DNA of 63,798 nt, counting the filler, from Octopus bimaculoides (lineage: Eukaryota), in the NCBI RefSeq assembly GCF_001194135.2. It is 7 parts of 5 records of this genome, joined end to end, with 100 filler letters (N's around TTAATTAATTAA, not from the genome) between each part and the next. Parts side by side here need not be neighbours in the genome. Positions count along the whole stretch, not along the records: positions 27,701 to 40,083 come from NC_068981.1; 6 more parts are not named here. One strand, written 5' to 3'. Every line of letters starts with the position of its first letter. The stretch's first letter is position 1. Below, piece by piece: positions 27,601 to 40,083 of this stretch. Below the pieces are notes generated by a model that was not told the origin of the DNA, did no database searches, and saw only the letters and a program-made list of their open reading frames with translations. Made by a program: the position numbers and the translations under genes.

Positions 27601-27710
27601 NNNNNNNNNNNNNNNNNNNNNNNNNNNNNNNNNNNNNNNNNNNNTTAATTAATTAANNNNNNNNNNNNNNNNNNNNNNNNNNNNNNNNNNNNNNNNNNNN
27701 TGTGTGTGTG

Positions 27711-27868
27711 TTAGTCTTACAGCTGTGTGTGTGTGTGTGTGTGTTAGTCTTACAGCTGTGTGTGTGTGTGTGTGTGTGTTAGTCTTACAGCTGTGTGTGT
27801 GTGTGTGTTTTAGTCTTACAGCTGTTTCTGGGATATCCCTAATATCCCAGAAACAGCCGTAAGACTAA
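27711..27868. repeat. Four copies of TTAGTCTTACAGCTG interleaved with (TG)n, the last forming a 27-bp-arm palindrome (27810-27868)
   Basis: Left arm TTAGTCTTACAGCTGTTTCTGGGATAT vs right arm ATATCCCAGAAACAGCCGTAAGACTAA: 26/27 complementary, 5-nt loop. Confidence 0.92.
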
Positions 27869-29128
27869 CTTTCTCTTTATGAATGTCCTGAAAATTCCAC
27901 ACAGCCTTGGCTATGTTGTCTCATTGTATTTAACATATACATGCTCATACAAGACTCGCATTAGAATCCTCACTCGTATTATCGAACTGAGAATTTAACG
28001 ATAGTCCTTCCATAGCACTTACATAGCCTTACTTGTCACCTTGGGTCTTCTGGATACCAATATATCTCACATATATCTATATACATGTATGTATGTATGT
28101 ATGTATGTATGTATGTATGTATGTGTGTATATATGTATGTATGTATGTATGTATGCGTGCATTCATGTATGTGTTTATGTATGTATATACATATGTATGT
28201 AGTTATGAAACAGTTAATGCGTCACACACGCACACAGTTACCACCACACGCACACACGCTACCACGCACATGCGCACAAACAAACAAACAAACAAACAAA
28301 AAGAACGCAGCCCGGATAACGGACAGAGTCAACGACCATTGAAAAGTTTGCAAGAGGCAACGAAAATTTTAGAAAAATAGATAAGTAAATGAGTGGGAAT
28401 CGAACCAGTGAGTGTGTTAAGTAATAAGGCACTAAAAGAGAATGACTCTTCTCAGACAATAATGTGTGTGTGTGTTTGTGTGTGTGCGTGTGTGTGTGTG
28501 AGTGTGTATGTGTGTGTGTGTGTGTATACATACACATGTGCATACACACACATATATTATATATGCATATACAATGTATATATGCGGAAAAAGTCGTAAA
28601 CAATTGTATTGAGATGTCATTGCCAGAGATGCGACATGAGAAGACATTAATATGGTAATTCAAGATCATTTGGCGATCCCAGTTGCGACAGAAATCTCTC
28701 GCAACTTCTAGGAGAAGTAGTCGTGAGTTCCGTCACGACTGGCATTGCCAAATAATGATGATTTTTTTTGTTTTTCTCAGAAACAAGTCGGACTCCACTC
28801 ATCTCTTATGATTCGTTCCACAGGAAGCTGTGAGCGACAAATCTTGATTTGTTCATGAAGCAGAGACAAGCGTCGGATACCAGAGCACGATAATCCACAA
28901 GAAGCGTTTTTATGTGGTCTGGAGCTAGATAATATCCTACAGAGATTATAAGACTTGATGGAATTTATCTCATTTCATAGCAAGGTTTTGATAGAAATAA
29001 TTTCCAACAAGGCTAAGAACATCGATGTATAAAAAAGTCAGTTGTCGTTTCATCCTGTAATGATTCACACCTATGATAAACAATATTCTGCTTGTGACCA
29101 TCTTGTCTTTTATTCATTTTTCATACAT

Positions 29129-29289
29129 AGGCGCAGGCGTGACTGTTTTGTAAGTTTGCTCCCCAACCACATGGTTCTGGGTTCAGTTCCACTGCGTAGC
29201 ACCTTAGGATGGTTTCTTCTACTATAATTTCGGGGTGACCAAAGCCTTGTGAACGGATTTGGTAGATGGAAATTGAAAGAAGGCCATCA

Positions 29290-29320
<31 letters not shown>

Positions 29321-29450
29321 CTGCGTTTTTCCCCCACAGCCGCTCGACAACCAGTGTAGTGTGTTTATGTCTCCGTAACGTAGCGGTTCGGCAAAAAAGA
29401 GCGATAAAATAAGTATCAGGCTTAAAATAAAAATGAGTACTGGGATCGAA
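29129..29450 (+). mobile_element. SINE family A
   Basis: AACCACATGGTTCTGGGTTCAGTTCCACTGCG head, internal (TG)n. Confidence 0.88.
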
Positions 29451-29880
29451 GAAGCAGTGTTATATTCAAGAAAATTACGCACTACCCGCTCTGAGAATTG
29501 AAATCATGAGTACAACTCATACAAATCATGTGACCGTTAGTACAACACCCTAATCACGACTTCGCAGGTTCAGTATATAAATCTTAGAATCGATACTTGC
29601 CAGCCAGTGAAGCAGTCTTCAATAACACAATGCTCCCACTATATACTAGCAGGGATTTTCTTCATTGAACCTATTTACAGATCACTGGACAAAGACACTG
29701 AGAGGTAAAGCGTCTTTATAAGAAAAAGGCCTGTCATCTCCGGTCATGGAATGCGAACCTTTGACCCTTCAGGCGGCAGACCAGCATTTTAACCTATCAG
29801 CCATTACAAATCTTCTCTTTTTCATCTTGATATTAATTACAGTTTTCTAATTAATTGTCAGAGTAATTCAGTCTTTCATC

Positions 29881-30217
29881 TTTTACTTGTTTTAGTCATT
29901 AGACTGCAGCCATGCTGGAGCACCACCTTCAGGAATTTTAGTCGAATGACTCGACCTCAGTACTTTGTTTAAGCCTGGTACTTATTCTATCGGTCTCTTA
30001 TGCCGAACTGCTAAGTTATGGGGACATAATCACTCCAGATAGATAGATAGATATGACGGGCTTCTTTCAGTTTCCAGCAACAGATTCACTCACAAGGCTT
30101 TAGTCGATCCAAGGCTATAGCGGAAGATACTTGCCCAAGGTTCCACACAGTGGGACAGAACCCAGAATCATGTGGTTGGGAAGCAAACTTCTTACCACAC
30201 AGCCACGCTCGCGTCCT
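29881..30217 (-). mobile_element. SINE family A
   Basis: Reverse-complement head CTTACCACACAGCCAC and tail TTTTACTTGTTT. Confidence 0.88.
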
Positions 30218-30219
30218 TA

Positions 30220-30930
30220 TTTTTCATCAATACTTTTAAGAACTCACTCAATAATGTATTTCTCTTCATTGCTCACCATTTCGCTGCCAGAATTCTACCA
30301 GCTTGTCAATGCCTTGACAGTAGAAATCATCAGATCTTGACTCGAAGAATTATTCAGCTAGATTTTCAGCTCCAAGTCATTGTCGAACGAAACGCCTCAC
30401 AGACTGTTGGAGAACGGTAAAAAAAGATGAAGATCTAAAGACGCTATATGAGGAGAATATGGTAGAACTTCCCAAACGAGCTCTTGAATAGCATGTTTGA
30501 GTCAGATTGGCGACATGAGGCGAGCGTTGTCGTGTTGAAGAAGTACGTTGGAGTCGTTTCATCTGGTCGGGTCGTTTCAACTAGACTGGGTCGTTGAGCC
30601 GGTGCATTTGCTGAACGTAAAGTTCTGCATTGACTTTGAGGTTGTCATCAAGCATCTCGTGATTAATTATTCCATTCCAAGCCAACCAAACGCAGATTAT
30701 TGTGTTGCGTGAATGCTGCTCTGGATGAAGCTCTGGATGCAGCACAAATATCTCGAGCGGATTTGGTAGCTTTGGATTCTTGGCTGAAAGTGAAGAGAAG
30801 CAGATGTCGAAAATGCTCGTAGTTTTCTACTTGGCATTCCATCGTTATATATCTGAAAAGAAGTAAAGCTTTTTTCAAATTTGAAGAACGATGAACGAAA
30901 GTTGCAGGGAAAAAATAAATGACAAAATCC
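30220..30930 (-). mobile_element. Internally deleted mariner transposase relic
   Basis: MECQVENYEHFRHLLLF...KSARDICA joined to QHDNAR-PHVANLT and FFESRSDDFYCQGIDKLVEFWQ. Confidence 0.88.
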
Positions 30931-30949
30931 ACAAAACACTAGCTTAAAG

Positions 30950-31080
30950 ATAATTCTGAGTTCAAATTTCACCAAGATTGGTTTTGCCTTTTACTCTTCT
31001 GGGGTTGATAAAATAAGTACCAGCTGAGCACTGGGGTCGATGTAATTGATTTACCACCTTGTGGCAAAATTTGAAACCAA
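30950..31080 (+). mobile_element. SINE family B, 3' part
   Basis: TTCTGAGTTCAAATTT...GATAAAATAAGTACCAG...AATTTGAAACC. Confidence 0.8.
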
Positions 31081-32084
31081 TATCATAGTTCCATTAATAT
31101 CCGAAATGTTTTAGATGAATATTCAATCAACCCCATACTTCACTGGTTCCGTCGCTTTTTGGTTTTTCTTTTTATGTTATCTTATGCGATATGTCCATGT
31201 TTAAGACAGTAGAGTGTGATTTGAGGGATATGTAGTTGCTATTTCTAGCAATTTGAACAACCTTCGCTGGCCGTTGAAGATGTTGGTTGAATAAGATTCT
31301 TTCGCTGATAATCGTCTGACAGATTATCCGTCCATCTTAAAAATGGAGATTTGGTGTAAAACGACGTATGATTTATCGTACGTCTCATCACAACATTTTC
31401 ATCAAGTTACAAAAACGTCTGGTATATCTACATGGACATCACACATTAATGTTTCCCTAAGATCTCCATTAGTCCCTTCAATTGGTCACAATATCTCGGA
31501 TGTGCCCCTGTTTTCGTCCATGATGGAACTATCGTCTGAACTTTTACAATATTTCTAGAGAAAGCTGATGTCGTTCATTGAATATGAAGCTTTTAACTTT
31601 TAGCCAAAACCCTAGGGTTTACTCCGTGAAATTTTTTCACGCAATGCTCATATGTGTTAAAATGATAAAAACGACTACAAACGTATCAAAGTCGGTGCAT
31701 GGCTGCGAAATGATGTTTGCGTACGTGCGCGTGAGTTTATGATTATGTTTATGACCATGCGTGTATGCCTGTGTGTATGTATGAAAGAAAGATAAAGTAA
31801 GCAAATATATATGCGTGTGTGTGTATATATATATATATAAATGTATGTCACGGCGTGTGTTTGAGTGCGCGCGTGTGTGAGCGTGTGCATTTGGCTGAGT
31901 GTGGTTGTTGCTATGTTCGTAATGTGTGTGTGTGCGTGCGTGTGTGTGTGTGTGTGCATGCGAGTATATATGAAGTTATGAAGGCACGTGTACGTACGCC
32001 TGTGTGTATGCTACAACCGCCATGTTAATATTCTACTTCTTTGTCTGTTGTCTGTCTGTGTGTCAGTTTCTCCCTCTCCCTCTC

Positions 32085-32138
<54 letters not shown>

Positions 32139-33312
32139 CACACACCCTGTCTTTCTCCTTTCTTCTCTCTTTCGTTTTCTTACTCTCTAAACCCGATCGT
32201 TTTCCCATATTAAAACTGCAATTTGCTTCCAAAGATCTCACGACCAAGGTCATCGGATTGATATTCGGGCGATCTGAGGCTTCCATTTTACACCTTGGCC
32301 TCAGCTATTGCAAATTCTTAGTCCACAATAAACACGACATTTCAGCCTCTAACACTTTGCGCCGCCATTACTCCCGACGATGATGATGATACAAGCAACC
32401 ATCACCACCACTACTATGATCATCATCATCATCATCGTCATCATCATCGTCATCGTCATCATCATCATGGCCGTCATCTCTAACCCAGAGCAGGACGGCC
32501 ACCAATAGAATAGCTCCAGACATCATTAGAACGAAACAGAAAAGTAGGTCATCTCCGTCTGCCTTCTCTCTTTCCTTTTCTGCCAGGTCTCTCTTCTTCG
32601 TCTTCTTACTGTTGTTGTTCTTGAGCTCTTACTAGACGTTAACCTCCACCCTTCGCTCGCTGTTCCTACAGTTGCCTTCCCTCCCGCGTCTTACTAATAT
32701 TATTATTTTTATTCTTCTCCTCTTATACGTCACATACCTCCCCGCTGACATCACTTATCACGGACAGAGCAGCAGTTAGCGGCGGCAGCAATATCAGCAA
32801 CATCATCATCAGCATCATCGTGATCGCCGCCGCCGCCACCACCACCACCACCACCACCACCACCATCAGCAGCGGCAGCTGTAGTTGTAGTAGTAGTATT
32901 AGTAGTAGTAGTAGTTGCAGTAGAGGTAGCAGCAGCAGTAATAGTAGTAGTAGTAGTAGTAGTAACGGCAACGATAGAAGCAGCAGCAGCAGCTGCAGCT
33001 CCACCAATGAAAATACTCCCTCAATCTAAAAATTCTCTTTCTCTTTCCCCCTCTCTCTCTTTCTCTTACTATTTCTCTCTCTCTACTCCTCTCCCCCTCT
33101 CTCTTTTTTTCTTGCTATTTCCCTCTCTCTACTCCTCTCCCCCTCTCTTATATCATTTACTCTGTCGATATCATTCAGTGCAAAGCATGAAGATCACAGC
33201 ATTCCGTTCTGCTTTCTTCATATTAAACCTCGTTGTTCTTTTTCTTTCGTATTTATAAATATTTTCTCTTTTGTTCATCTTTTTTTGTCCAGCACCTTAT
33301 CTGAAGCATTAA

Positions 33313-33690
33313 GGCGCAGACGTACGTGGTTGTGTGGTTAAGAGGCATGGTTCCGAGTTCAGTCCCGCTGCGTGGCACCTTGGGCAAATGTCTTCTACTA
33401 CAGCCTCGGGCTGACCATTAACCTGTGAGTAAATTTGGAAGACGGCAACTGAGTGGTAACCTGTCGTGTGTGTGTGTCTTTGCGTTTATATTTGTCTTTT
33501 CCCAATCGCAAGGCAACTGCTGTTGGTTTGTTTACATCCCTGTAACTTAGCGGTTCCACAATAAGACCGACAGAATAACTACCAAGCTAAAAGAAACAAA
33601 AAAACAGTAAGTCCTGGGTAGATTTCTCTGACTAAAACCCTTCAAGGCGATACCCCAACATGGTCGCAGTCCAAATAAAAGAAAGATAAA
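33313..33690 (+). mobile_element. SINE family A
   Basis: GTTCAGTCCCGCTGCGTGGCACCTTGGGCAAATGTCTTCTAC. Confidence 0.85.
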
Positions 33691-33884
33691 AGTAACATCA
33701 ATTTCGTAATACCCTAATTTTGTATAATGCTAATTTAGTATTAGACTGATTATGCATTGCGACTATTTTCTGTAACCCTAATTTTGTATAAGAATAAATT
33801 TGTATCACACCAATGCCGAGGATCTCTTATGGTGAAAGCACATCATTAGCGTAGACGAGATCGTCACCCGAACAGAGCCGAATG

Positions 33885-33885
33885 A

Positions 33886-33917
<32 letters not shown>

Positions 33918-34103
33918 CGCCTCCCAACCATCGCTTGACAACCAATGCTGGTGTGTTTACGTTCTCGTAGCGGTTCGTCAAAACAGACTGATTGAATAAG
34001 TACTAGGCTTACAAAGAATAAGTCCTGGGGTCGATTTGCTCGACTAAAGGCGGTGCTCCAGCATGGCCGAAGTCAAATGACTGTAACAAGAAAAGAACAA
34101 AAT
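33885..34103 (+). mobile_element. SINE family A, 3' half
   Basis: CATCGCTTGACAACC...GGCGGTGCTCCAGCATGGCC. Confidence 0.88.
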
Positions 34104-34489
34104 GAATGACACCATGAAAACTTCGAAATTATATTTTCAGTCATATAAACCACTTCAAATATTATTTTAGCAAGTTTAAAGTGATTTCTTTCGTGCCGTA
34201 AACCGTTTACCATTCCCTTCACTTGATGCCCTCCACACGCGCTTATTTTGCTTGATGGTTAATCCAAAGACCAGAAGATATTTCATTTCACAACTGCGGA
34301 CGCTAAAAAGGCTTAAAGCCGACCCAAACTGGAGTGCTGTTCCTACAATTTGATTGGTGCTACTACTAAACACACAGATATCCTGGATAACTGGATCGAA
34401 TTCGGACAATAACCACTCTGTGATTCGTATTCACGCTGTCTCTTCCTTCTTGTTTTTTTTTTTTATCCTTACTATAATGGTCCCTTATG

Positions 34490-34800
34490 AAAGCTCGTGG
34501 TTTGGTGGTTAAAGTATCCAGCGCACGATCGTAAGGACATGAGTTCGACTACCAGTGGCGCATTGCGTCCTCGAGAAAAACACTTTATTCCACATTCCTC
34601 CCCTCCGCTCAGCTGGCAAAAAGGAGTATTACCTGTATTTAAGGGCCAGCATCGTCACGCTGAATCTCCCTGAGTACTATGTTAAAGATACGCGTGTCTG
34701 TGGAGTACTTATCCACTTGCACGTTAATTTCACCATCAGGCTGTTCTGTTGATCGGATCGACTAGAACACTCGTCGTTGTAACCAATGGAATGCCAGTTA
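34490..34800 (+). mobile_element. SINE family C
   Basis: tRNA-like head (GAGTTCGACT) plus family C body. Confidence 0.85.
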
Positions 34801-34829
34801 AAGTGAAGTTATAATGGTCTCTGTTCTTT

Positions 34830-35640
34830 AGAGTATGTAGGTCTAGTCTTTGCAACCAATCAGGCGTTCCCGGTCCATTCATCTTTCCATTTTACTCTGT
34901 TCTACTCTCCCTCCCCCATCCCAAATTTCTTCAGTTCTACACCAAACATTATGCTCATCCTTCACCCCAGAATACGGTCTTCAAGATTATCTGGCCCACT
35001 CATGTCTTTCCTGCAGTTTAAACGGAATATCAACCGCGACAATCTCATCCTGGCTTGGAGGGCCGGCAAGGGCCATGAACTCTGTCCCCTCCTCCAGACA
35101 CAGTATCGACCAGACGATCAGGCGATGTCATACACCGCTGGCCACAATGTGCTTCCAATTTTGTCTCGATTGCGCCGTTCTTTTCCATCTTGGCCCAATT
35201 GCTTGACCAAATCGTCTTCCCATCGTCGTAGAGTCCTTCTCCGTGGCCTTTTCTGATCTCTTGGATACCATTCGGTAACTACTTGGGTCCACCGTTTGTC
35301 TGTGAATCTTGTGACATGTCTGGTCCAGTGGAACTTGTGTTTTCGGTATTCTGCACTCACATCGTTCACACCTCCCCGTTCTCGATTTATCTTGCATGCC
35401 CCTTTCCGTAGACCTTTGCGTTGTGGCCAATCGATGTTCTATCCCCTTCGTAGTAGCCCACGTCTCACTTGCTCATATGAGCACATGTAGGACATTGTTA
35501 TTGATGAGTTCTATCACGTATTGTGGTCTGGAGCACATCCTTTATTGTGTTAAATGCCTTCCATACTGTCCTTATTCCTCTTGAGATTTCAGTATCCATA
35601 TCTCAGCGTATATTCACCGTAGGCCCTAAGTGGTCGTACT
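34830..35640 (-). mobile_element. 5'-truncated RTE-clade LINE (3' end of RT ORF plus 3' UTR)
   Basis: NNNVLHVLI*ASETWATTKGIEHRLATTQRSTERGM and KFHWTRHVTRFTDKRWTQVVTEWYPRDQKRPRRRTLRRWEDDL match RTE YGSETW and WAGHVxRxxDxRWT...RWxD motifs. Confidence 0.92.
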
Positions 35641-35862
35641 CTCTTTACCACCCCTATTCAGCTTTGTGCTACATCTTCTGACACAGGATCTAAAACGTTT
35701 TATTTTAAATAAAACCAATTAGTTGTACAATACACATTTTGGTATTTCATTTAATTCCTATTAATTAATTTGGTGTAAAAGTACCAGCGGTCTCGTTAGA
35801 GGGCATTGTGGCCTGGTTCGGTGTTTTACGCCCGTTTTGTCTACAGCGAGAAATTTTCTCCA

Positions 35863-36050
35863 CAAGGCGGTGAGCTGGCAGTAACGTTAGCACGCCGGGT
35901 CAAAATGTTTAGTGGTATTTCGTCTGCCGCTACGTTCTGAGTTCAAATTCCGCCGAGGCCAACTTTGCCTTTCGTTCGTTCGAGGTCGATAGATTAAGTA
36001 CCAGTTGCGCACTGGATCGATCTAATCGACTGGCATCCTCCCCCAAAATT
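35863..36050 (+). mobile_element. SINE family B inserted in monomer 1 with ~12-bp TSD (AAATTTTCTCCA / AAAATTTCTCCA)
   Basis: Filled site here; the equivalent empty site is visible in monomer 2 at ~36390-36405. Confidence 0.92.
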
Positions 36051-36282
36051 TCTCCATGACAAAACAAAGTCAATGTATTTTTTTACAGGTTCAAATAAGC
36101 CTCAAGCATATTTGAACTGGTAACATGTTTGTATTTATACACATTACTACTTAGTGCTGTTAGCCCATATTTTATTTACGGCCAACCGCCCACTAGTGCA
36201 ACCAGTCATTGAACGATGACGAGACTATCATATGATGGACTTGTCTCTCATGTTAGCTCACAGCATCTGCTTTTCCGGTCTC

Positions 36283-36328
36283 TGCTGCTGAAGAGGAGAT
36301 AACCACTCTGAAATGCATGCATCCGACA
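36283..36328 (+). ncRNA. Type I hammerhead ribozyme, catalytic core fully intact
   Basis: TGCTG-CTGAAGA(36288-36294)-GGAG-ataacca-CTCT-GAAA(36310-36313)-TG-catg-CA-T-C(36323)-CGACA. Stem II 4 bp, stem III 3 bp within palindrome ATGCATGCAT, AUC triplet, stem I 4/5 pairs. Confidence 0.8.
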
Positions 36329-37097
36329 ATCTTGCTAGGGAGCGCTGTGAAATGACTCACTGTATTTACACATCTTTGTCTACAGCGAGAAATTCTCCCC
36401 ATGACAAAATACAGTAAATGGTTTTCTTACGGCTTTGAGCATGCCTCAAATATATTTGAGCTGGTAACAAGTTTGTATTCATACACATTACTGCTTAGAG
36501 CTGTCGCCCCTATTTTAAAAGTAATTTTGTATCACGCTAATCCGATATTACTTCCCATTTGGCAATTGGCACTTTACTAGTTTGCTATTTCTCTATTATG
36601 ATGATATTACATCAATTTCTTTACAACAATATTTCGCATGACATCAATTCTGTGTTACCTTAATTTTGTATCGTCCAAAAACATTGTAATATTTTTTATA
36701 ACAATTTTTGGTTTTAAAAGCAATTTTTGTATAACAATTTGGTTTTAGCCTCATGTCGTAAAATACTAAATAGATATTTCGATGTTTTTTACATAATCAC
36801 TAATTTGGATCTATTTTAAAACGGGGGCCACATTTTTCATTAATGTTTTACGTAGTGTTTTTGGTACGGAAAGACTTTCAAACTTCGTATACTTATCTAC
36901 TTTGTGTTATAGAACAGAAAAATATTTTTGTATTCGAATTTATTTCATGTAAAAAATTGTCTTATTTCGATAATTTCAACCAATCACTGACAAGTATTCA
37001 GTTGTTTACATTTACTCCTTTGGCTGATTAAGCGATGTAAAGCGTATTTAATCTCCATACCTTCGTTTTATTTGCTTTTTTCATTTTAAATTTGCTT

Positions 37098-37153
37098 TAA
37101 CCCTAACACTAACCTTAACCCTAACCCTAGGGTTAGGGTTAGGGTTAGGGTTA
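37098..37153. repeat. Interstitial telomere-type repeats in a palindromic (CCCTAA)n-(TTAGGG)n junction centred on CCCT|AGGG (37128/37129), running into a gap
   Basis: TAACCCTAACACTAACCTTAACCCTAACCCTAGGGTTAGGGTTAGGGTTAGGGTTA. Confidence 0.92.
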
Positions 37154-37825
37154 NNNNNNNNNNNNNNNNNNNNNNNNNNNNNNNNNNNNNNNNNNNNNNN
37201 NNNNNNNNNNNNNNNNNNNNNNNNNNNNNNNNNNNNNNNNNNNNNNNNNNNNNNNNNNNNNNNNNNNNNNNNNNNNNNNNNNNNNNNNNNNNNNNNNNNN
37301 NNNNNNNNNNNNNNNNNNNNNNNNNNNNNNNNNNNNNNNNNNNNNNNNNNNNNNNNNNNNNNNNNNNNNNNNNNNNNNNNNNNNNNNNNNNNNNNNNNNN
37401 NNNNNNNNNNNNNNNNNNNNNNNNNNNNNNNNNNNNNNNNNNNNNNNNNNNNNNNNNNNNNNNNNNNNNNNNNNNNNNNNNNNNNNNNNNNNNNNNNNNN
37501 NNNNNNNNNNNNNNNNNNNNNNNNNNNNNNNNNNNNNNNNNNNNNNNNNNNNNNNNNNNNNNNNNNNNNNNNNNNNNNNNNNNNNNNNNNNNNNNNNNNN
37601 NNNNNNNNNNNNNNNNNNNNNNNNNNNNNNNNNNNNNNNNNNNNNNNNNNNNNNNNNNNNNNNNNNNNNNNNNNNNNNNNNNNNNNNNNNNNNNNNNNNN
37701 NNNNNNNNNNNNNNNNNNNNNNNNNNNNNNNNNNNNNNNNNNNNNNNNNNNNNNNNNNNNNNNNNNNNNNNNNNNNNNNNNNNNNNNNNNNNNNNNNNNN
37801 NNNNNNNNNNNNNNNNNNNNNNNNN

Positions 37826-37857
<32 letters not shown>

Positions 37858-37860
<3 letters not shown>

Positions 37861-38020
37861 GTCGATGGCTTCCGCACACCATCTGTACACCAAATTCACT
37901 TACAGAGCATTGGTTGGTCCGGGACTATATTAGAAGACACCCAAGTTGCCGTACCGTGGGATTGAACATACATAATTACATACATACATAATTACAAAAT
38001 GAGCTTTTTAACCACCCGGC
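37858..38020 (-). mobile_element. SINE family A, 5' half, diverged
   Basis: CAAATTCACTTACAGAGCATTGGTTGGTCCGGGACTATATTAGAAGACAC resembles the family A reverse complement. Confidence 0.7.
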
Positions 38021-38199
38021 CATACCTGATTAACTTATTTTTGTAGAACACGAATTTTTTCAGCAACAGACGGGCATGGTAGCAGTTTGGTTTCTAGTTT
38101 CGCATAAGACCAATTTGGTATTACATAAGTTTAGTATAATTTAATTTTTGGAATCACACTCATCTGGTATAAGACCGGGGCAGCCGTTGAGTTTGCCGT

Positions 38200-38500
38200 C
38201 CATCCTCTGAACAAACTCATACAGGTTTCTACAGCAGACCCTAAAACGCCGCCCTCGTTAAAGTGTTGGCCGGGACGGACGGACTACCTCACCTCCACCT
38301 CAGCTATGTTACAGATTGTAAACTTACCTGGGTGTTAGGTTTAACCCATCGTCCGTTTTAAGCCGAACCAATCGTTCCCAGGATATCTTTAGACAAGTTC
38401 ATTTTGTGGCAAGCAAGTAGTCAGACTAGATTTCGGTTCTGACGACACAATTTCCTTTCCCCAATCTCAAAGGCCGTGAAAGGAGTTCATAGGTGCTGCT
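38200..38500 (-). mobile_element. Possible L1/Tx1 ORF2 post-RT fragment
   Basis: SDYLLATK*TCLKISWERLVRLKTDDGLNL resembles FLW..K...VxWxxLxxPKxxGGLxL. Confidence 0.45.
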
Positions 38501-39852
38501 CTTCCCCGTTTATATCTTTGAAAAATATTTGGTAGGAACCCCTAGTCTAGCATCAAAACTTCTGTACACACTTTTTGCTTCATTTCGTTTTCCTTCCAAT
38601 TTTATTGGCTTCCGTTTTCTGCCATTGCATTCTTGCGTTTCGTTCCACCTATATTTAACGTGCTCATTATCCAGTCTATTATGAGTCACTTTTTCATTGT
38701 TCCAATGTCTCGGTTTGTCTCTTTGTGTCTGGCTGTCTGTCTAACTGTCTGTTTGTCTGTCTGTCTCTGTCTGTCTGTTTGTTTGTCTCTGTCTCTCTCA
38801 CTCGCTCTCTCTTTCTCTTTGTTTGTCTGTTTGTCACACACGTCCCACCTGGTTTCATTCTTATTTCCCTATCCTTTTAACAATATCGTTATTTATCCAA
38901 TAACATTTAAAATGATTTAAACGGAATGATTCGTGCACGAATGCAGCGAGGCATATGTAAGAATGAATATATGAATATATATATATATATATACTCGTTC
39001 ATATGTATATATTCTATATTCACACACACATACACACACACGCACGCTTATATATGGCTGCGTATATCTATCCCAGTATATTTTCTGAGTATTTTTCTAT
39101 TTCTTTCACTTTCGCATTTTCTTTTTTCTTCTTATTCCATTCACATTCTCCAACACTCAATCCACCCCACCCCACCCCCATCATATCTTACGTCTCTCTT
39201 TCTTCACCATCCCATTCCCCACCCCGTATCCCTTCTCTTTCTCATCCACTGCTTCGATATTTTATTCAACGTCAACATCTCATCTCTACCTTCGCCATTT
39301 TCTTTTACAAACTTTTGTTCCTTTTTTCCCTTTCTTTTGATCTTTCTCTCTTTCATTTCTCTTTCCTTTTTCCTTCTTTTATTCTTTCTCTCATTTATTG
39401 TTTGTCTTTTTTTCTTTCTGGATTTCCTCTTTCAGTTTTTTCTTTGGTTCTTTCGCGTCGATGTCTTGTTTTTCTTCCATCTCACCAACCACCCAACAAT
39501 CCAGCTACGTACATCACTTTGCACTGAGAGAATAAAGCAAGTTTTACTGGGTTTTTTTTTTCCATTCTACCACATAAACTTCATCGCTGTCACCCGGTCG
39601 GGACGACGACCACCATCAATGCCATCACCACCACCATCATTAGCAGCAACAGCAGCATCTTCATGATCACCATCACTATCACCGTCATCATCATCATCAT
39701 CTTCACCACCACCTCCAAATGACTAGATTATTTCTATCAGTTAAGTGAATCATATGATTAATATTTGTTAATATATTTGTAGTGTACTGTAGACACCACT
39801 TCGCCACCTTAATACATCGCAACAACGTCTGAATGTCAAAGTTTATTCGTTT

Positions 39853-39853
39853 G

Positions 39854-39916
<63 letters not shown>

Positions 39917-39994
39917 GTCTGTCTGTCTGTCTGTCTGTGTATCTGTTTATCTATCTATCTTTCTACCTATCTACCTACGTACCTACCTAGCTTC

Positions 39995-40083
<89 letters not shown>
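39853..40083. repeat. Compound (TCTA)n/(TCTG)n/(CCTA)n microsatellite
   Basis: Direct reading. Confidence 0.95.

Follow-up and report, generated by a model that had tools for sequence, protein, structure and literature searches.

The block 35784–36515 of the Octopus bimaculoides window (the window being the whole stretch of DNA analysed, 63,798 nt) is probably an ancient, decayed and dispersed 1.56-unit copy of a small non-coding retroelement family that carries a canonical metazoan type I hammerhead; the element is similar to the non-LTR retrozymes, and its template would have been a multimeric RNA with a self-cleaved 5′ end. The block lies in a 12.4-kb piece of the window (positions 27,701–40,083), and its features, all on the plus strand, are described below in the order of the insert itself, its ribozyme and family, and the template from which it might have been copied.

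Architecture, boundaries and age of the insert

The block consists of 1.56 copies of a 345-nt unit (40% GC), the first of which is interrupted by a SINE, and is flanked by two identical copies of the 8-mer TAAAAGTA, at 35776–35783 and at 36516–36523, the right one followed by ATTTTG. The target is AT-rich, with ATT directly after the target-site duplication (TSD). A sequence-only reading of this DNA had pointed to these flanking 8-mers, and they hold up as a TSD rather than a chance feature because an equal 8-mer match, with a slack of ±3 nt allowed at each end, was obtained for only 0.13–0.18% (about 0.15%) of random boundary pairs drawn from the 12.4-kb piece. Unit 1 opens at 35784–35862 with the sequence that follows the cleavage site in the family (a relic of the helix I 3′ strand, then TTGTCTACAGCGAGAAATT...), an assignment based on the alignment to unit 2, on the family post-cut consensus derived from loose ends and on the orthologues. 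Behind the SINE, it resumes at 36045–36323, up to the predicted cleavage site after C36323 (self-comparison repeats D1 and D2; 81% identity in blastn). The partial unit 2, identified by blastn and by alignment to unit 1, occupies the 192 nt from 36324 to 36515 and stops in the middle of the unit at ...CCCCTATTTT.

The direct repeat that the same reading had described, with the post-cut sequence recurring from 35784 onward, is real: with the SINE excised, the two unit copies are identical at 149 of 193 positions (77%), the offset between the repeats in the self-comparison (D1 and D2) is 344–345, and alignment detected no similarity between the flanks of the insert and the continuation of the unit. 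The unit length of 345 nt likewise bears out the monomer of about this size that had been predicted on removal of the SINE, which the family contigs skip. Conservation is uneven along the unit, with 81–82% identity between 36390–36517 and 36046–36174 (blastn), 93% between 36375–36401 and 35836–35862, and only 62.5% over the first 50 nt of the copies, where homology is secured by the agreement of the family consensus and the orthologues. Judging from these alignments, the two copies either had diverged already in the source or the insert would have to be very old.

The SINE (35863–36044, 182 nt, 52% GC, read depth of about 1e5, repeat D7) is a secondary insertion into unit 1 and is bounded by near-identical 12-mers at 35851–35862 and 36045–36056; in family contigs that lack it, the joints begin at 35862. 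ARAGORN identified no intact tRNA within it. Thousands of reads of the SINE family continue past 36052 with GGGCCTTGTGCCTAGAGTAG..., a sequence missing from the copy at 36045–36056, and therefore the 12-mer AAAATTTCTCCA may be partly SINE sequence with microhomology to the AAATTTTCTCCA of the retrozyme rather than a clean TSD; the SINE copy itself may be 3′-truncated or joined via microhomology. This SINE family is represented by a further, diverged fragment at 30954–31049 (74% identity to 35935–36029).

In three other organisms, here B, C and D, contigs cross at least one junction of the insert at about 3–6% divergence, the right junction being present in all three, and the orthologous contigs of B and C contain the SINE as well. 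The insertion is fixed in the four related species sampled, and both the insert and the SINE inside it are older than these species. Among the runs of organisms B, C and D, which all carry the insert, no empty allele was found, that is, the orthologous empty site with a single TAAAAGTA by which the insertion was to be checked did not turn up. The orthologue in organism C shows a 1-nt insertion within the left TSD copy and, to the right of the insert behind 36533, a tandem duplication of 16 nt (ACGCTAATCCGATATT), both of which are lineage-specific changes that occurred after the insertion.

The surroundings of the insert contain relics of other mobile elements. On the minus strand, between 34900 and 35700, there are frame-shifted ORF fragments (...ASETWATTK..RLATTQRSTERGM... 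and ...HWTRHVTRFTDKRWTQVVTEWYPRDQKRPRRRTLRRWEDDL...), which we take to resemble the C-terminal region of an RTE/CR1-type LINE ORF2; the segment 35524–35640 is moderately repeated, at 10–30 times the single-copy depth, and a Pfam search detected no reverse transcriptase (RT) domain in the neighbouring ORFs. An ORF combining a telomerase-like RT with GIY-YIG, as in an autonomous Penelope-like element, is absent in and near the element within the 12.4-kb piece. The Penelope-like RT relics that had been reported for this window were not recovered in that piece, the neighbouring relic being presumably RTE/LINE-like. Farther away, an 89-aa ORF (30663–30932, minus strand) matches Pfam HTH_48, the helix-turn-helix of the Mos1 transposase (E = 7.5e-6, 26.4 bits against a cutoff of 24.1), and looks like a mariner-type transposon relic. 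The only Rfam matches on the piece are microsatellite-driven microRNA false positives: the TG/CA/TA microsatellites at 28050–28600, 31770–32150 and 38950–39040 yield sub-threshold matches to mir-297, mir-466 and others, and microRNA genes at these sites were rejected as low-complexity artefacts. An assembly gap of 672 N (37154–37825) separates (TG)n and (CA)n repeats.

The hammerhead and its family

All elements of a type I hammerhead core are found in the canonical order at 36288–36323, namely, CUGAAGA (C3 to A9, with A as N7) at 36288–36294, GAAA at 36310–36313 and AUC ending at 36323 (U36322, and C36323 as C17), with helix I open; the core is invariant among the family reads, the depth of which peaks over it. 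Helix II is formed by GGAG/CUCU (4 bp, 36295–36298 with 36306–36309) and closed by a 7-nt loop, and helix III lies within the 10-nt palindrome AUGCAUGCAU (36313–36322). Helix I is long and interrupted: in the structure drawn on the majority-rule consensus, its 5′ strand (36252–36287) comprises a distal 14-bp part at 36252–36265, short helices and a proximal part at 36282–36287, and its 3′ strand (36324–36356) opens the partial unit 2, where pairing is regained at 36325, 36329, 36333 and 36352 with the majority bases of the family. Within the 12.4-kb piece, a type I descriptor written by hand matched at this single site, compared with an expectation of 0.0003 computed on Markov-1 simulated sequences; a chance motif was rejected on these numbers, and the earlier identification of a type I hammerhead with all core bases is confirmed. 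The additional stem I pairing proposed along with it also exists, given that TCACAGC (36258–36264) is complementary to GCTGTGA (36344–36350), in a helix that lengthens to 14 bp in the family consensus.

The ribozyme of the window copy is decayed and defective. Pair 10.1–11.1 is a G36295:T36309 wobble in place of the canonical G–C, there are mismatches in proximal helix I, 29 of the 36 pairs of the full structure can form and 7 are broken, and the minimum-energy fold is not a hammerhead (z = −0.8). Type I hammerhead models, which had been suggested as a check, do not recognize this copy: the Rfam family Hammerhead_1 and its relatives gave no match with the E-value limit set to 1 for the piece or to 10 for the 201-nt slice 36200–36400.

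The other copies of the element were surveyed by mapping unassembled genomic reads (about 1.9 Gb, or about 0.7× coverage) to the locus at a similarity of 80%. The read depth reaches about 570 at 36290–36319, the sharpest peak, which coincides with the ribozyme core, against 0–2 in the flanks, and the family to which the decayed window copy belongs comprises several hundred copies, as the prediction of many genomic copies had it. Contigs from other loci contain blocks of the unit twice in direct order, with joints that go back. The longest ORF of the 345-nt unit is 49 aa, the unit being non-coding and devoid of an LTR; a protein-database search with this ORF, which spans the ribozyme, gave no candidate for family copies.

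In the genomic reads, no variant exceeds 8% in the core heptamer, GAAA or AUC; the most common variant within the motif, 36317 A>T (28% of the reads), falls in loop 3. Position 36309, a T in the window, is C in 352 of 567 reads (62%), which restores G10.1–C11.1, and the contigs of a second species likewise carry C there. Over 36250–36359, the majority base differs from the window at 15 positions, none of which breaks a pair; Watson–Crick pairs are restored at 36257, 36265, 36309, 36329, 36333 and 36352, and two G:U pairs become Watson–Crick ones. The family consensus forms 34–35 of the 36 pairs (−51.8 kcal/mol, z = −5.4), with a proximal helix I of 6 bp, three short helices that small internal loops set apart from one another and a distal helix of 14 bp (GUCAGUUCGCAGCG / CGCUGUGAACUGAC). 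Because the consensus regains the pairs and the fold lost in the window copy, the latter descends, in decayed form, from a structured master sequence that contained the ribozyme. The core without common variants and the restoration of pairs in the consensus further suggest selection on the ribozyme in the family. Loose-end consensus strings, as opposed to linked reads, also suggest a subfamily in which CUGUGA/UCACAG replaces CUGUUG/CAACAG in proximal helix I, which would amount to two compensatory pairs.

The 31-mers specific to the window locus occur in no RNA run, that is, the locus is not transcribed at a detectable level. The family reads in three RNA-seq runs come from one or two paralogues and pass straight through the cut site. 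The dominant paralogue, present at a similar level in all three runs (reads placed on 36247–36510), carries A6U (36291 A>T) and 36296 G>A, which fits an inactivated ribozyme inside a longer transcript. No pile-up of read ends was observed at 36323/36324 in the three runs, where the transcribed paralogues are mutated, an absence that speaks neither for nor against the cleavage of intact copies. The libraries resemble standard cDNA ones and are probably unsuited to small circles, and junction reads are indistinguishable from tandem DNA copies.

Ends of the insert and the nature of its template

The relationship between the 5′ end of the insert and the scissile bond is central to the origin of this copy. 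The family sequence around the cut, as derived from loose ends, reads C, then the cut, then CAACAGUCUGGUUAGGGGGCGCUGUGAACUG..., and the insert in the window starts with C-CAGCG-GTCTCGTTAGAGGGC. At 35787, 35805 and 35816, the orthologous contigs from B and C read A, G and A, respectively, each time in agreement with the family, and therefore the ancestral start was C-CAACG-GTCT.... Aligned in this manner, C35784 corresponds to C17, and the sequence from 35785 onward to that from position 1.1 onward; under the UCACAG subfamily alignment, the first base of the insert is itself position 1.1. On either alignment, the 5′ end maps within one base of the scissile bond. The proposal that it equals the cleavage site accordingly stands to within one base, and its strict form runs into the extra C at 35784, equal to C17, which needs a non-templated base or a 1-nt indel. 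The 3′ end, ...CCCCTATTTT, is in the middle of the unit, 192 nt beyond the cut site, and 36515 is not a family-wide terminus because the consensus runs beyond it with ATTTACAG..., like unit 1. Most of the reads over the post-cut region also contain the ribozyme upstream (family loose ends, six best per run); in the loose-end test of 5′ ends, copy B is too diverged from the family directly past the cut site, and the cut-site 5′ end, along with the mechanism built on it, rests on a single locus.

The following scenario would account for these observations. The multimeric transcript of a tandem source would be self-cut by the ribozyme, leaving a 5′ end at position 1.1. An RT acting in trans, by analogy the enzyme of a Penelope-like element, would nick an AT-rich target with an 8-bp stagger, and target-primed reverse transcription would begin at an internal position of the RNA, 192 nt downstream from a ribozyme site, proceed through one uncleaved ribozyme and run off the cleaved 5′ end. 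The expected outcome is an insert between two copies of TAAAAGTA, as is seen here; afterwards, the SINE inserted into unit 1, and the ribozyme was disabled by point mutations, many of them at CpG sites.

In the sequence-only reading, the template was a possibly circular RNA read for 1.5 rounds. Such a circular monomer, self-cleaved, ligated, reverse-transcribed for about 1.5 rounds in rolling-circle mode and integrated, would explain the more-than-unit length of the insert and would not require either end to match a transcript end; indeed, circular templates have been proposed for more-than-unit copies (PMC4209133, PMC7229834). A circle is nonetheless not required, because it offers no terminus at the cut site and the insert stops partway through a unit at its 3′ end, so that the position of the 5′ end would have to be a coincidence or the circle would have to reopen while being copied; internal priming on a linear multimer that had been cleaved at its 5′ end is the simpler fit. 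Furthermore, copies of one circle start out identical, yet the two units are at 77% identity while the 8-bp TSD is intact, and circle-specific RNA evidence is lacking, junction reads being inseparable from tandem DNA. We consider a circular template unlikely.

About as improbable is an ordinary 5′-truncated cDNA of a multimeric transcript, where synthesis stopped near the ribozyme either accidentally or through stalling of the RT in the structured helix I/III region, self-cleavage being uninvolved. A random end has a prior of about 3/345 of falling within one base of the cut site, and there is no obvious cause for a stall at the scissile bond rather than at the foot of the 14-bp helix. What keeps this explanation alive is the extra C, as if the template had kept the base upstream of the scissile bond, together with the dispensability of cleavage in vitro, where insertion by a Penelope-like element is independent of the hammerhead (PMC11167929). 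RNA ends at the site were found neither in that work (PMC11167929) nor in the present RNA-seq data, and random 5′ truncation is usual for Penelope-like elements (PMC8557442).

The pseudo-LTRs of Penelope-like elements contain hammerheads, insertions of these elements are typically partial tandems (PMC8557442), and a preprint derives animal retrozymes from such pseudo-LTRs (10.64898/2026.07.22.740005); conceivably, then, the insert, instead of being an independent retrozyme, could come from the pseudo-LTR region of an autonomous Penelope-like element, as a partial tandem shortened heavily by truncation. The period of 345 nt, with no coding sequence between the repeats, argues against this origin, as do the short-period direct repeats on other contigs and the absence of a Penelope-like RT from the 12.4-kb piece, and we regard it as quite improbable. 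A DNA-level event without reverse transcription (tandem duplication at the locus or the capture of a piece of satellite) combined with a fortuitous hammerhead-like motif would be compatible with the divergence of the two copies and the missing Rfam match, but was rejected as barely credible in view of the significant 8-bp TSD, the motif expectation of 0.0003 and the hundreds of dispersed copies, in which the ribozyme core is the most conserved part and the consensus restores the fold.

Hence the reading that we prefer is a linear, self-cleaved multimeric template. The role of the hammerhead in Penelope-like elements and animal retrozymes is still debated and has been described as unclear (PMC8557442, PMC11167929), and if cleaved RNAs serve as templates, the footprint to be expected is a TSD-bounded insertion that begins at the cleavage site. 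By itself, the locus is an inactive fossil that adds one more taxon to a known class. A tentative and rather doubtful extension is that a cephalopod retrozyme lineage is still active, in which TSD-flanked copies would systematically begin at position 1.1 and terminate where priming occurred internally. Counting such footprints across a cephalopod genome rich in repeats would open the template question to computational testing; systematic starts at position 1.1, if true, would provide, for the first time, genome-scale evidence that a Penelope-type RT uses a template whose 5′ end is defined by self-cleavage.

Relationship to known hammerhead-bearing elements

Among known ribozymes, the closest counterparts are the canonical metazoan type I hammerheads, such as those of Schistosoma and the newt satellite (PMC4209133), which share with the octopus motif the 6-bp proximal helix I, the 4-bp helix II and the short palindromic helix III (AUGCAUGCAU), as well as, in the family consensus, G10.1–C11.1; in contrast to these, the window copy is not scored by the Rfam models. 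The short palindromic helix III of this form is expected to act as a dimer (PMC4209133), and for the octopus motif the palindrome predicts an active dimer joined by an intermolecular helix III of 10 bp (cofolding, −14.8 kcal/mol).

The notion of a template that owes its 5′ end to self-cleavage is shared with R2, L1Tc and other non-LTR elements that carry an HDV-like ribozyme, as these are cited in PMC4209133. As cited there, however, the HDV-like ribozyme belongs to another class and is kept in the 3′ product, whereas the octopus hammerhead lies mostly upstream of the cut and would be lost.

With Penelope-like elements (PMC8557442, PMC11167929), the octopus insert shares insertion as a partial tandem, a hammerhead near the repeat junction, an AT-rich target followed by ATT and a 3′ end inside the unit, as predicted by internal RT initiation. 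Partial tandems are the normal product of Penelope-like elements (PMC8557442), and for the RT of one of them internal initiation without homology and AT-rich (ATT) targets are documented; the one element tested in vitro inserts without the need for hammerhead cleavage, and no cleaved RNA ends were found (PMC11167929). Unlike these elements, the octopus element has no RT/GIY-YIG ORF, a unit of 345 nt compared with about 3 kb and no ‘tail’ that we could find, and no fixed initiation site is evident in the family, where the consensus passes the 3′ end of the copy.

The greatest similarity is to the metazoan non-LTR retrozymes of coral, mussel and axolotl (PMC7229834): the octopus family has the type I hammerhead, a non-coding unit of 345 nt, within their 150–450 bp range, a GC content below 50%, no LTR, PBS or PPT, several hundred copies including more-than-unit ones, a TSD of 8 bp at the window locus, where theirs exceed 4 bp, and a long, highly paired rod around the ribozyme. 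The window locus differs in being a dispersed 1.56-mer rather than one of their long arrays; for the metazoan retrozymes, linear and circular monomer RNAs as well as self-cleavage are on record, whereas the octopus copy is known from its sequence, with a decayed ribozyme. The suggestion of an uncharacterised cephalopod family is correct insofar as PMC7229834 covers the mussel among molluscs and does not mention cephalopods, and goes too far insofar as the class as such, mussels included, had already been described. The giant-squid genome paper lists 235 Rfam hammerhead_1 matches without further analysis, a circular template was proposed in 2014 (PMC4209133), and the derivation of animal retrozymes from the pseudo-LTRs of Penelope-like elements was put forward in a 2026 preprint (10.64898/2026.07.22.740005). 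By its sequence features, the octopus element appears to be a cephalopod addition to this known class of metazoan non-LTR retrozymes and Penelope-associated hammerheads.
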